NCBI RefSeq assembly: GCF_902652985.1
Contig: NC_047032.1
Location: 17,236,001-17,300,000 of the forward strand
Reading direction: 5' to 3'
Length of the DNA stretch: 64,000 bases
DNA from: Pecten maximus
Lineage: Eukaryota
In this document: one piece after another, positions 40,901 to 49,900 of the stretch
How the letters are laid out: each line of letters opens with the position of its first letter
Numbering within the stretch: the stretch's first letter is position 1
Position numbers and translations under genes: made by a program
The notes under the pieces: model-generated
Databases searched by the model: none
The model's input: the letters and a program-made list of their open reading frames with translations, nothing else
Told to the model about the DNA's origin: nothing

Positions 40901-43900
40901 CGTCGTTTCGGTCACATACCCGTAGGTAGGCAGGCTTGTAGTAAATGGTTTCTGAAAACATATTCACAACAGGAACATATTTATATAGATTTAACTATTT
41001 TCTAACTGTAAATTCTTGTCATTGTAAACAATGTTCATATAATGCAATGTATGCGATCAGATCCGTCCTTAAAGAGCTGTCCGATAAAATGTGAATATTT
41101 GCACTACACAGTACACTTTTAAGGAGTGTGGACGGCTGATCCTTGTGGGTCTAGAACCAGGTCAAAAGCGCATTAATGGGTGAATCATATATTGACGTAT
41201 CAATTACATAGATGTAAATATAGATGCAAATGTATTAGCAAATTTTTGTTTAGTCAAATGATTTTGGTACACTCGTCACACAGAGGTTATAAGAAAAAAT
41301 AAATATAAGCTCCACGGAATATTTAAATATCTAACCTCTGTCAACTGTTGTTAATATTAAACTCGGGAATTCCATTTATGGGAAAAGAACTGAAGAGTAC
41401 GGTTGTGCATGCTTTCATAATGTCTTTGAGGTGAATGCAATAGATATGTACAAAGCTAAAATGTCCATAAGATGAAACAAATATTATCAGAACGGTTTGA
41501 AAGTTTCCTTCATCATCGAGAATACTTCTTTATCTTGATATATTTATCTTTTTCTGGTGTAATATATGAGTGCTGCAGTTATATTTGTCTTCAAATAATC
41601 AATTTAATTTCCAATTGTTTTACATGATATACATACCGCATTTTCAATAGTTATGTTAAGTTGAGAAGTGCCACTGTACCCGTCGTTATCCACAACTTGA
41701 AACTCTAGAACGTAAATTCCGGATGTCGGATTTGAGAGAACTTTTACATCAACTAAAATAAAGAATGAAAAAAATCATACATCATTGCCGGTGTTAAGAC
41801 AATATTTCTCGATCAGAAAAAAAAAGAAGAAAAAAAACAGAAAGAAAAATAAGCATACCTGATGTAACTACATTCGGAACGTATGTGATTCTGATTCTAT
41901 CGTTTTTATCTAAAGTGGATGCATCATTATTTGCATCCTGAAGAAACTGTATTGTTTTTAGTCTCTATTGATTTGTATGTAACTTAAGGCCTTATAAGCG
42001 GTTACCTTTAGGGGACTGTGAATATTTCGCATGCTTTTCATTTCTCGTTCCTTTTTCTCTCTCTCTAAAAACCAGCGCATGCGCCTAAATCCAGCCATAC
42101 ATAAAAACACGGAAATATTTGATGTAGCCACAATTTCACATATTTGTTTTGGTTATAATTTAACAAGTGATAAAAACTAGATAAAAAAAAACTGCTTTAT
42201 TATCGATAAGAACCACAGCCTTGTTACATGAGCCATGTATGTTATTGTAAAATGATGTGGAAGGATTTTCTCTAAATATAATTACTTCTATTTGGAACGT
42301 TGAATCTTTCCCAAAAATGAAGGTTTCTGCACATCATGTAAAAGAGTTTCCAATAACTCACTAGAAAATATGATATCCGTCCTTCTACCATAACAATGCT
42401 GATTCACAAGTTCTAATTTTCAAATCCTTATACAATCCAAATTCCTTCTTTGTGAACACCACATTACCTTATCAAGGAGACATCAATGAGCTATTGAGTT
42501 ATTTTCTCTTAAGAAACATTTGATGTTGTTTCTCTTTTAAAGGGCATTTTAGAAATATTTCAATCATTTCTTGTCTATCTTACTTCCTTACTTACGTGTC
42601 ACTGGATCTAATTCGAAGTACGAAGATGAAGATGTCATAGTTGTAGTCATCGTGCCGCCGTCGGGGTCCGTCACTGTGAGGCGTACTACAGTTGTCCCTA
42701 CAGATGTGGTGTCCGGCAGGGTGGATATTGTAGGGGAACCACTGAATGTTGGCGTAACAGCACTCAGACTAAGCACCGTGACCGATAATGTAGCAGCTGC
42801 CGTATTTGAGCAGTCATCAGTTGTCTGAAAAGTCAAGCTGTAACTTCCCGCCGGAACGGTGGAAGACACCATTATTTCCACTAGAATGTAGAATATATTT
42901 TAACCAGTAAGTAAATATTCTTTAACATTTGCTTCAAATTTATATTTTCGCTTACATTTTCATAGATAAACAGCTAGCCAGCCAGCTGACCTGATACAGC
43001 AGAAAGAGTCAACAAACAAACCGGCCGAGGTTACACTAACTGCCATGACAACTAAGAGTTCATATATAGGGGTTGCTATGCTTTCATAATGATAGAAAAC
43101 AAAACTTGTATATTATCATTGGTTTTCAAAAGCAATTCAATTCAAATGTGGTTGTGTCTATACCCGCGAGTAATTCTTCAAAACGACTGAAATGTCATAA
43201 TCTGCAATGTTTACCGAAAGAAACATTATTCAAAAATTCAGGAGGGAAACTGCTTATGATAGCGTCCCCCCTCACTAATGTTCATACGATGGTATTTGTC
43301 AGAACAGATATTTTTTCTGCGTCGCGTACTTTCTCATTAACAAATATTTCAGAAAGAATCCGGTTTTGAATCATTTCATGCATTTCACTATTGGAAAAAA
43401 TATTATGTCAAAGTAAAACTTTCAGAGTCTTTCCATCAAAGCAATAAATGAGTTGAATTGATTCGAAAAAGTCATCAACATAGCACAGTTATTTCACGTA
43501 TCCAACTCATCAAAAGTCTCTAACTATTTACTATCACTCACGTGAAGACGTGTCAAACGAAAAGTAAGAGGATGATGACGTCATCACTGTGCTGAGCGTG
43601 CCGCCGTCTGTGTCGGACACTGTGAGTGTGAATACAGTGGTTCCGACGGCTGCCGACGTAGTTATGGAGGCAGTCGGAGTGGCGTCGGAGAAGGTCGGTG
43701 TGGCAGAGCCAGCACACGGATCTGTGACGGTCACTGTTAGCGTGGCTGTTGCCGTGTTGGAACAATCATCGGTCACCTCGAAATTCAGGTTGTACGTGGC
43801 AGCGGTTATTGGCGATGCTAAAACCTTCACCTCAACTGAAATAAAACCTTCAGTAACTAAAAAGTGTTATCAAAGACTTTTACATTAACCACCACGGTAA

Positions 43901-46900: not shown

Positions 46901-49900
46901 CACTGTGAGTGTTGAAACTGTAGTCCCGACAGCTTCCGATGTAGATATGGAGGCAGTCGGAGCGGCGTCGGAGAAGGTCGGTGTGGCAGAGCCAGCACAC
47001 GGATCTGTGACGGTCACAGTTAGCGTGGCTGTTGCCGTGTTGGAACAATCATCGGTCACCTCGAAATTCAGGTTGTACGTGGCAGCGGTTATTGGCGATG
47101 CTAAAACCTTCACCTCAACTGAAATAAAACCTTCAGTTAATTTTTATATTAGCCTCTCCCGATTATTTTGACATTACTCTATTTTCGATTCTGTGAGTGT
47201 GTGATGCCTTTCCATCCTTGATTATTTTAAGGGTCATCTAAAAGGAAATGAAGCGATATATTACAACCCGTATGGTACTGGCATTGAAGTGACTTCGAAC
47301 TTGATTTGTTATTATAAGGTAATACTTTACAAAAACTTAAATTGGTCAAAACATTTTCATAAGAAACATCATCGAATTACTATAGCCATTTTCTTTAGAA
47401 AAATAAAGAAAACACATCACAACGCTTTTTCCAACACAGGTTAATTGTCAGAAAAACAAATGTCGGCGACATTTACTCGGCCGAAAGAGTCAGCAAACAA
47501 ACTAGCCGACGTTACATTAATTGCAATGACAACTAAGAGTTGTGTTTAGGGGTTGTGTATAGGGGGTGCATAGGGTTGCTATGCTTTCAATATGATTAAC
47601 GACCGGACATGCACATGATCATTAGTTTTTAAAAGTCTATTCCCGAGGCCAATTTTTCGAAATATTTACATTTTCACTTCGCTCCGCCTAAATGAAACTA
47701 GTAAACTCAGATCACTTACTTCCCGTTGGATATTTTGGGTCGCGTGCTTCTGTTCTGAGAGACGAATCACTTTCTTGCCGGCGTGTGAATACATTCTCGT
47801 TGGCTTTCGCGATCTATTGTTGTACTACCTTTAGACTTCAATACACTTTCATTTTGTGAATAGTGTAACATTGTTATATATGTATATGAACATAAATGGA
47901 AGAGACGCTTTGTGTTTATAAATATGCAATAGACAAAAGGATATGACAGAACACTGACACTCCCGATAGCACCGAGCTCATGACCTACGTAGCGCAGTAG
48001 GAGTGGCTGTATCCCGAATACGATACTGGATATGATTTAAGTGGTCACAGAAAATGGACCTCAATTTTAACACTGTTAACAACATAAAACAGACTCGATT
48101 CAGCAATACGCTATTATCGAGCGCAGGGATACACTACTATCGTAAGAGGTTCCTTTGACTCATAATGTAAACACATGGAGGACACACAAAATCGGGCTAT
48201 CGAATACCGCCAATTTTCAAATAAATGTTTCTCTAGTTACTTTCATCAAAATTTGCATAAAAAAATGCCAGTGCGACAATGAAATCCAATATTTCAAGAA
48301 CATGATATAAATCCTCAGCCGATCTGCGAGTTAAATCCACATTGCTACTTTTTTCTCTGAACTCTGAACATCCCGGCTATTAGACTGTATCTTATAGACG
48401 GTCACAGGGCTCGGTTTTAGATTTTGAGTATCATATGGCATCTACAATTGTATTAATAATCGCAAGACTAAAAATCAAACATTCCTTTACGTTGCCGAAC
48501 CTTACAAAATCAAATTTGACGAGGTTTTAGTGTGTATGTAAACACTGAATTTTTAGTGTTGTGATATTTCACTTTTGCCACATTAAACTTGTGCTCAATT
48601 TTCTTAAACAAGTCTCTGTGTTTCCAGTGACCAAATCACACACATATTATACTATCAACACTGCGCTTAACATTCGTATTTATATGAGTATGGCTTTTTA
48701 TTATTTTATTAAGTTTTTATTATAAAATATCATCAATAGTTGTTTTAAATGAGTTTTGTTTTGTGTTGCCTTGGCAACGGGAGTAGCTGACTGACTGCGC
48801 TGATCCACTACTGTGCACACATGTACGATAAGTATAACAATGTAGCAAAGTGGCGCATTTACATCCTACCGTTGCGACCGAATTTTGCAATCTGATGGGG
48901 GGATTTATATTTTGATAAACGTTCACTTCATTTGCACGAGGTTCATCGCTTCATCATTTTATGCAAGCAGCAAATTTGACAATAAATCCATCAATGATTA
49001 AAAATTTATAATATGCAATGTGGTTTTTAAAATGTTTATACGAATGGGGTTGATTGAACAGATATGTTTCTGTGTCGCTTACTATATTATGAATTAATAT
49101 ATAGGAATTAATCAAGATTTGAATAATTTAATGCACTTTGCAAAATATCGTGTCACAGTAAAAATGTTATAGACGTTCGATTAAACCAATACATGGGTTA
49201 TATTCATTCGAAAAAGTCATCAACCAGGCGCAGAGATTTTTGCGTTCATAATTCCACGTATCCAACTCATCAAAAGTCTATAATTGTATACGATCACTCA
49301 CGTGAAGACGTGTCAAACGAAAAGTAAGAGGAAGATGACGTCATCACTGTGCTGAGCGTGCCGCCGTCTGTGTCGGACACTGTGAGTGTGGATACTGTAG
49401 TTCCGACAGCTTCCGATGTAGATATGGAGGCAGTCGGAGAGGCGTCGGAGAAGGTCGGTGTGGCAGAGCCAGCACACGGATCAGCGACAGTCACTGTTAG
49501 CGTGGCTGTCGCTGTGTTTGCGCATCTGTCGGTGACTTTGAATTCCAAACTGTAGGTATTGGCCGGCGGTGTAGTCAGTACGCTGACTTCAACTAAAACA
49601 CACAAAAAAAAAAAAATAAAAATAAAAAAAAATACTGATGTTAACGAAATCGTATTATTACACAAACGTGATCAGAACAAGTGTAAGGCTTAATGTGAAG
49701 ATTATTAACGATTACATGATTAATGTGTTGATATTCCGAAAACAAATCTTTCATATTTACAGTCTAGCAATATAGTTTCTTAAGTTACCGATTAGAGATA
49801 ACAGACAAACACACAAACATACAATGAAAACGTTAAACGGGGTTTTTCAAATTATGTGTTTAATGTGACGAAAATAGATCGTTTTTTCTCCACGTAAAGA

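Follow-up and report, generated by a model that had tools for sequence, protein, structure and literature searches.

A tandemly duplicated array of cysteine-bearing cadherin repeats in scallops, with a candidate disulfide at its repeat junctions

The stretch of DNA considered here, called the window below, comprises 64,000 nucleotides of the scallop Pecten maximus (RefSeq assembly GCF_902652985.1, 918 Mb in 3983 contigs; contig NC_047032.1, positions 17,236,001 to 17,300,000), and all coordinates below refer to it unless another source is named. Its base composition is that of AT-rich, eukaryotic DNA. Reading of stop-to-stop frames and splice sites shows one long multi-exon gene on the minus strand, one that encodes the RefSeq protein 'cadherin-23-like [Pecten maximus]' (P0151, 1518 aa). 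P0151 runs from position 57363 down to 25821 in 23 exactly matching pieces; thus, the window holds the gene for this protein. In a tblastn search with P0151, exons outside a tandem array match at 100%, and those of the array at 97-99% because the matches overrun the exon ends by 1-2 residues. The protein would start with a signal peptide and a β-rich N-terminal domain of ~160 residues, continue with the array, which is poor in calcium motifs, and then with about seven further repeats, and end with a transmembrane helix and a short tail. Some of these further repeats have canonical calcium motifs. The region is best explained as a scallop-specific, tandemly amplified part of a type I membrane protein of the cadherin superfamily. 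The cysteines of the array, and the bond that they may form between neighboring repeats, are the main subject of this report.

The array is encoded by six exons on the minus strand, all with AG/GT boundaries and with phase 1 at both ends. Five of them, named A to E, were placed by a regular-expression scan for AG|TTGA...C|GT(A/G)AG units. Exon borders in the array fall midway through repeats, and each exon thus spans two neighbors: the F-G loop and G strand of repeat n come first, then the n/n+1 linker, and lastly strands A-D of repeat n+1. The first half of repeat 1 (strands A-D, PTNLPTF...SDVDGD) lies upstream in a separate exon at 50442-50688, where 50688 is the RefSeq start and an orthologue-like acceptor is found at ~50630. 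Exon A (49302-49592) then supplies the second half of repeat 1 with an F-G Cys in TDRCAN, a linker Cys in DPCAG, and the first half of repeat 2. Exons B (46825-47118, 98 codons), C (45648-45941), D (44691-44984), and E (43542-43835) each carry TDDCSN and DPCAG. Exon F (42596-42880) contains the last F-G Cys in TDDCSN and continues through a Cys-free linker, LSLSAVTP, into the repeat that follows, of which it encodes the first half; the second half (VVDNDG, ITIENA) is found at 41637-41752 by mapping of P0151. In RNA-type contigs from public runs, the donor at 50442 is joined to ~49590, and exon A runs directly into the beginning of an array exon; these exons are therefore transcribed and spliced in series.

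An earlier note on this DNA, made from the letters alone, had pointed to the span 42596-49592, whose limits coincide with where exon F ends and exon A begins. It placed TDDCSN or TDRCAN in the F-G loop and DPCAG in the linker, and the alignment of the six exons bears this out. In exons A-E, the linker Cys follows the F-G Cys by 16 residues. The exons also agree with its reading that each of the five Cys-bearing linkers precedes a repeat with an F-G Cys, while LSLSAVTP precedes the Cys-free VVDNDG. Six F-G Cys and five linker Cys are counted in the window. This count is equally compatible with pairing of a linker Cys to the next repeat and with pairing inside one exon, since either scheme leaves a single unpaired Cys, and the two differ only in the end of the array at which it lies.

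The five array copies are recent tandem duplicates of one unit. Units consisting of an exon plus an intron are 89-94% identical in DNA; at ~1 kb they are longer than 500, the longest period handled in Tandem Repeats Finder, and hence do not appear in its output. Exons B, C, and D differ from each other by only 5-9 nucleotides, all synonymous, although their introns are only 85-90% identical, which shows purifying selection on the array exons. The intron between exons A and B (49301-47119) is 2183 nt long, against 661-883 nt for the other array introns, and may hold an insertion or a decayed unit.

The duplication bears directly on how the cysteines should be read. Both Cys are placed in one duplicated exon, so their co-occurrence in the window is inherited and is not independent evidence; the five-fold co-occurrence that the earlier note had counted as support amounts to a single observation. 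From the same facts it could be argued that the Cys pair has no special structural role and simply hitch-hikes on an amplified, homogenized unit, its members being free, buried, or variably oxidized. The copy number, which differs among scallop genera, would also fit this explanation. Against it, the differences between exons B, C, and D are all synonymous while the introns have diverged. The homologues described below add to this objection, and on balance we regard hitch-hiking as quite improbable.

The array repeats belong to the cadherin family. A phmmer search of all PDB sequences with one exon returned cadherins at the top (CELSR1 at 2.6e-9, followed by PCDH10, DCHS1, PCDH15, CDH23, and FAT4) and nothing other than cadherins down to E ~0.1, with PKD domains appearing at E ~0.3. 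P0151 reaches 139.5 bits against the Pfam Cadherin model (PF00028; cut-off 28.8) in six stretches, and its orthologues 115-123 bits. Single exons score 22-23 bits, under the cut-off, because each represents half a domain. Among Atlas look-alikes of residues 301-500, the best family-bearing clusters were cadherins in 10 of 10 cases. In the orthologue P0001, the repeat matching the VVDNDG repeat is the clearest Cadherin stretch (807-883). Membership of the PKD families (PF00801, PF18911, PF22352) was not found: K319L-like_PKD gave 24.1 bits in P0151 against a cut-off of 27, there was no PKD or PKD_4 match, and the array repeats, as read from alignments, lack the WDFGDG-type segment of PKD. Searches for HYR (PF02494 or HYR_4C) gave only sub-threshold Pfam matches, the HYR_4C score in P0001 being 19.5 bits against 27.

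Calcium motifs of cadherin repeats appear in the order XEX-DXD-D(R/Y)(D/E)-XDX-DXNDN, and the top of XDX lies near the F-G loop (PMC8691648). Motifs were mapped from the same search by the ungapped alignment with CELSR1. This alignment matches the F-G Cys with the Gly of AxDxG, two residues past the Asp of the XDX top, and CAGSA falls on DxNDN with the Cys replacing the first Asp. The mapping is only approximate at the residue level, because a gapped alignment in the same phmmer output treats PC as a two-residue insertion. The spacing from the F-strand Tyr to the next PxF is of canonical cadherin length. Array repeats have T or S at XEX, ASPITAAT at DRE, and (DP)CAGSA at DxNDN, and thus lack the canonical motifs of the n side, as the earlier note had claimed for xE, LDRE, and DxNDN; four of the five copies do have a Glu two residues downstream of the XEX position. 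The n+1 side is different. DxD (SDTDGG) and the XDX Asp (TDD) are kept in every array repeat, and these retained motifs were absent from the earlier account. That account also had the proximal repeats keeping LDYE, NVNE, and DINDN, and the reading frames of the membrane-proximal repeats do contain LDYE and NVNE (34286-34098) and DINDN (32980-32621).

One exon, used as the query in a full HMMER scan of 1.84 billion representatives, and a word search with the Ylistrum orthologue yielded the relatives of the protein. Among scallops, Ylistrum balloti (P0001) and Argopecten irradians (P0153) have seven F-G Cys and six linker Cys each, and Mizuhopecten yessoensis (P0152) has five and four. All three arrays end, like that of Pecten, with TDDC, an LSLS-type linker, and the VVDNDG repeat. 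Every array copy in the four genera keeps both Cys, and the number of copies varies by genus. A Mizuhopecten protein with a linker Cys followed by a Cys-free loop (P0002) was considered as a rule-breaker and rejected: it is an exon-skipping GenBank model of the P0152 gene on the same contig, and the RefSeq model P0152 shows the full Cys pattern.

Outside scallops, relatives were found in Mercenaria (two proteins), Mactra, Sinanodonta and Potamilus (five proteins), and the gastropod Babylonia. In addition, the contig of the window gene bears three near-identical tandem paralogues (L019-L021, G000:C18:15.374-15.467 Mb), whose exons were placed by tblastn with residues 1-183 plus 211-310 of P0151. 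In these paralogues, the same N-terminal domain (GCTCG) is present, only one repeat bears an F-G Cys (VQDSCGK), and the linker after it is Cys-free; they represent the ancestral architecture in the same genome. One Cys-bearing repeat after the N-terminal domain is likewise the rule in the non-scallop bivalves, and Babylonia has two. All non-scallop relatives and the Pecten paralogues keep the F-G Cys after the N-terminal domain (VSDQC, VVDLC, VSDSC, VQDSC). No Cys at +16 from the F-G Cys was found in any homologue outside the scallop gene itself, i.e., in bivalves, Babylonia, or the Pecten paralogues. Complete N-termini among these homologues have an N-terminal domain with three Cys, arranged as C plus CC or C.C. 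In the multiple alignment, the scallop VVDNDG repeat is the one before a conserved SLPTYGY repeat and has lost its Cys, and the scallop repeat adjoining the N-terminal domain has kept the F-G Cys. In Babylonia areolata (P0105), Cys78 lies at the XEX base of repeat 1 and the F-G Cys242 in repeat 2, with no linker Cys; these two may form a different cross-junction pair at a former calcium site.

These distributions speak against a passive role of the cysteines. Retention of both Cys in each copy across four genera, edge repeats that keep exactly the Cys needed for pairing with an upstream partner, and conservation of the repeat-1 F-G Cys across bivalves and a gastropod are hardly what hitch-hiking predicts. 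As to co-conservation, which the earlier note had proposed as a check, both Cys stay together in the four scallop genera, and elsewhere the F-G Cys stands without a Cys at +16. Because the F-G Cys is kept in this way, it is old, needs no downstream partner, and has its natural partner upstream.

The same comparison applies to another possible arrangement, a bond between the F-G Cys and the Cys that follows it by 16 residues in its own exon. An F-G hairpin disulfide of this sort, C187:C201 with a spacing of 14 residues, exists in the second extracellular cadherin (EC) repeat of PCDH24 (PMC8691648), and the two scallop Cys are never inherited apart. The AlphaFold2 model of the Mercenaria orthologue, however, has the F strand at residues 254-263, the Cys at residue 266, and the G strand at 269-279 (mean predicted local distance difference test score, pLDDT, 71; ~80 in the repeat region). 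The stretch between the two Cys positions is thus a single 11-residue G strand, which puts the +16 position beyond the far end of the strand and makes a bond inside one exon unfeasible. Moreover, the canonical distance from the F strand to the next PxF leaves no extended hairpin, homologues keep the F-G Cys without the +16 Cys, and arrays end with an F-G Cys that would stay unpaired. Pairing within the exon is nearly excluded, and we give it a very small chance.

The pairing that we favor runs in the other direction. The linker Cys (DPC, six residues before PTF) would bond to the F-G Cys (TDDC) of the repeat that follows it. Repeat 1 has no preceding linker Cys, and its F-G Cys would instead bond to one Cys of the N-terminal domain, in which their number is odd. 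We consider this topology probable, though by no means secure; the disulfide itself is inferred from the sequence. The bond between repeat 1 and the N-terminal domain would be the ancestral state, in line with other molluscs. On duplication of the repeat in scallops, the new linker Cys would have supplied an upstream partner for the next F-G Cys and made the duplication viable. The linker Cys is positioned two residues past the G strand of repeat n, so that a bond from there would leave almost no free tether and would favor stiffness. The lower end of repeat n would thereby be fixed to the upper end of repeat n+1, at the spot where DxNDN and calcium site 3 normally act. By extension, and speculatively, the array could be a stiff, largely calcium-independent stalk that raises the N-terminal domain by ~25-30 nm.

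The N-terminal domain, which would provide the first partner, is encoded by four exons. The exon at 57283-57363 (residues 21-47) holds Cys24, and that at 55393-55557 (residues 48-102) holds Cys61 and Cys63 in QVQCTCG, so the three Cys counted in the earlier note are indeed there. Residues 103-127 are found at 54516-54590, from which an RNA loose end joins to 52345, and residues 129-184 in the last exon at 52177-52344. All four were placed by exact mapping of P0151. The domain (residues 22-182, exons 57363-52177) matches no Pfam family, and the Atlas clusters closest to it, with scores of 0.95-0.96, consist of unnamed annelid and sponge proteins. The RefSeq model joins 52177 to 50688 and thereby adds ~27 residues with an extra Cys196, which the Ylistrum and Mizuhopecten orthologues do not have. 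By eye, the ends of this intron depart from the canonical GT-AG. An LDP-V-PTNLPTF sequence like that of the orthologues would result if a GC donor after CCA G were used with the acceptor at ~50630. The RNA contigs at this junction between the N-terminal domain and repeat 1 stop near 50684-50687 or continue to 50805 and do not decide between the two joins.

Bacterial proteins provide a parallel. Among the 150 matches listed, five PKD_4 arrays and one Bact_surface_Ig-like array from bacterial or metagenomic sources (P0009, P0016, P0018, P0069, P0121, and P0138) carry C.GN..P ... TDxCG with the two-Cys spacing of the scallop array, i.e., 66-82 residues and then 15-20, and have DPCAG-like linkers. 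They differ in domain family, with 530 bits for PKD_4 and 169 bits for Bact_surface_Ig-like, and the likeness to the scallop repeat is confined to the stretch of F-G strand and linker and is probably convergent. In all six, the first Cys is of the linker type (C.GN..P), 66-77 residues ahead of the earliest F-G Cys, and the last one is an F-G Cys. Four of the PKD arrays then continue with a Cys-free linker and a last domain with a Cys-free F-G loop. By analogy, this edge pattern reads as the signature of a linker Cys paired with the next F-G Cys. PDB searches with the bacterial analogues returned no solved structure carrying the Cys pair.

The array edges also help to weigh a further explanation, namely that the cysteines link different molecules, either parallel copies on one cell or a shed polymer. 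The eleven extracellular Cys of the array are an odd number, the parity of the total Cys in Pecten is not clean, and a protocadherin fragment with free Cys formed disulfide-linked dimers when refolded (PMC6769022). Intermolecular dimers of PCDH1 were, however, judged rare or artefactual by the authors of that study (PMC6769022). Arrays with one linker Cys fewer than F-G Cys, next to an N-terminal domain usually bearing three Cys, are what intramolecular pairing with an upstream partner predicts, and the bacterial arrays follow the same edge logic. Cross-linking between molecules is therefore unlikely in our judgment.

Several observations weigh against pairing of the linker Cys with the next F-G Cys, or at least against its replacing calcium. 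Within scallops, the two Cys always share the duplicated exon, and only the array edges are informative. The acidic carboxylates of DxD and XDX remain and could still hold a calcium ion. The bacterial arrays are an analogy and not homologues, and several of them are related to one another. The Cys parity of Pecten is blurred by Cys196 and by the exon at 38881-38750, where Pecten has SYSSCPF against two Cys (C..C or C....C) in Mizuhopecten, Argopecten, and other bivalves; with this partner lost, parity of the whole protein is unusable as an argument. In Babylonia, no linker Cys stands before one of the repeats that bear an F-G Cys, and the partner of that F-G Cys would have to be a Cys at the XEX base. 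Finally, the pairing is derived from a sequence pattern, its conservation, and the secondary structure of an orthologue. A two-chain complex prediction of repeat 2 plus linker (P0151 residues 303-409) against repeat 3 (410-500) scored 0.03, which is evidence neither way. Taken together, the interpretation of the earlier note is partly supported. Its upstream pairing is favored by the scallop edges, the lack of +16 Cys elsewhere, the G strand, and the bacterial edges, and the bond itself is a plausible candidate.

Other features of the window are as follows. The membrane-proximal repeats, with LDYE, NVNE, DINDN, and intradomain Cys pairs, are encoded on the minus strand by seven exons between 32621 and 40951 (40951-40775, 39390-39235, 38881-38750, 35119-35000, 34829-34644, 34286-34098, and 32980-32621). 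The transmembrane segment (VAWLTSFCFTTFCSICLIGYLVY) is in the exon at 30500-30730, as found from its reading frame and the mapping of P0151, and the same mapping places the cytoplasmic tail in the last coding exon (25821-25955), both on the minus strand. The intron between 30500 and 26207 contains several long minus-strand frames at 29307-27402 that look retroelement-like by eye and have no Pfam match at E below 0.001. A 28-bp satellite occupies 2502-8696 with ~221 copies and 87% matches, and accounts for the strong negative GC skew there. Near-identical open frames on the minus strand at 62562-62329 and 31917-31708 (…HLWVASSKPTWG…PPPPKPGTSLNDPGC) suggest a dispersed repeat; the former has no Pfam match.

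The rod shape of cadherin ectodomains is credited to calcium at every junction. An array that lacks the n-side ligands and has a Cys pair at that very spot would, if the bond is true, show that a covalent link can take over. The bacterial PKD and Ig-like match suggests, by analogy, a broader design rule for extracellular repeat proteins. In its widest form, the disulfide from the linker to the next F-G loop would be a general, repeatedly evolved head-to-tail lock of β-sandwich repeats, which in scallops replaces calcium at five to six consecutive junctions. We put this forward tentatively and think it rather doubtful; if it holds, the array would be the first cadherin stalk with its stiffness set by redox state and not by calcium. 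The scope is narrow, being one gene family in Pectinidae with no function assigned to the protein.

Comparison with known systems helps to place the array. In HYR, an Ig-like repeat that forms tandem arrays in invertebrate extracellular proteins, one Cys lies close to the N-terminus and the other close to where the last strand begins; the scallop repeats differ from it in scoring as cadherin. CDH23 and P0151 are both multi-repeat membrane proteins of the cadherin superfamily. P0151 differs in its non-cadherin N-terminal domain of ~160 residues, its ~14 repeats, and an array in Pectinidae that has no counterpart in CDH23. The protein has neither an EC1 tip at its N-terminus nor 27 EC repeats, as a cadherin-23 orthologue should, and the name 'cadherin-23-like' is an automatic best-hit label.

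Junctions poor in calcium are themselves not new. In the non-canonical linkers of PCDH24 EC2-3 and PCDH15, XEX, DRE, or DxNDN residues are lost at particular junctions, and linkers with two or fewer calcium ions are reported to be flexible, except for the straight, two-calcium PCDH24 EC2-3 (PMC8691648). The scallop junctions share this loss of n-side motifs, but the calcium-poor linkers of PCDH24 and PCDH15 have no compensating covalent bond, where the scallop junction has a conserved Cys pair. Cadherin disulfides have been described in the E-F loops of protocadherin EC1 (PMC6769022), besides the F-G hairpin of PCDH24 EC2 mentioned above (PMC8691648). The closest precedent is the EC1 of PCDH15 and CDHR5, in which a Cys of the N-terminal strand A is bonded to strand F and keeps the strand closed, much as calcium site 0 does in CDH23 and PCDH24 (PMC8691648). 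The earlier note, which did not recall such a case as described, was too strong on this point. Literature searches for interdomain disulfides in cadherins and for calcium-free linkers gave nothing relevant beyond this study (PMC8691648), and nothing at internal junctions.

By their positions in the sequence, the scallop Cys appear comparable to the strand A and strand F Cys of PCDH15 and CDHR5. The topology would be shared, in that a Cys just before the A strand would be joined, at the top of a repeat, to a Cys in the F strand or the F-G loop, and so would the logic of a disulfide in place of calcium. The Cys of PCDH15 and of scallops may be equivalent at the residue level. By the usual convention for domain boundaries, the proposed scallop bond is that of PCDH15 and CDHR5 EC1, and what would be new here is the reiteration of such a bond at internal junctions, not a new kind of bond. 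In PCDH15 and CDHR5, it occurs once, at the free tip of EC1. In scallops, it would occur at five to six internal junctions, with the upstream Cys placed in the linker between repeats and with the canonical linker motifs gone. If this is true, a solution used only at the tip in PCDH15 and CDHR5 has been extended along the inside of the stalk in scallops.

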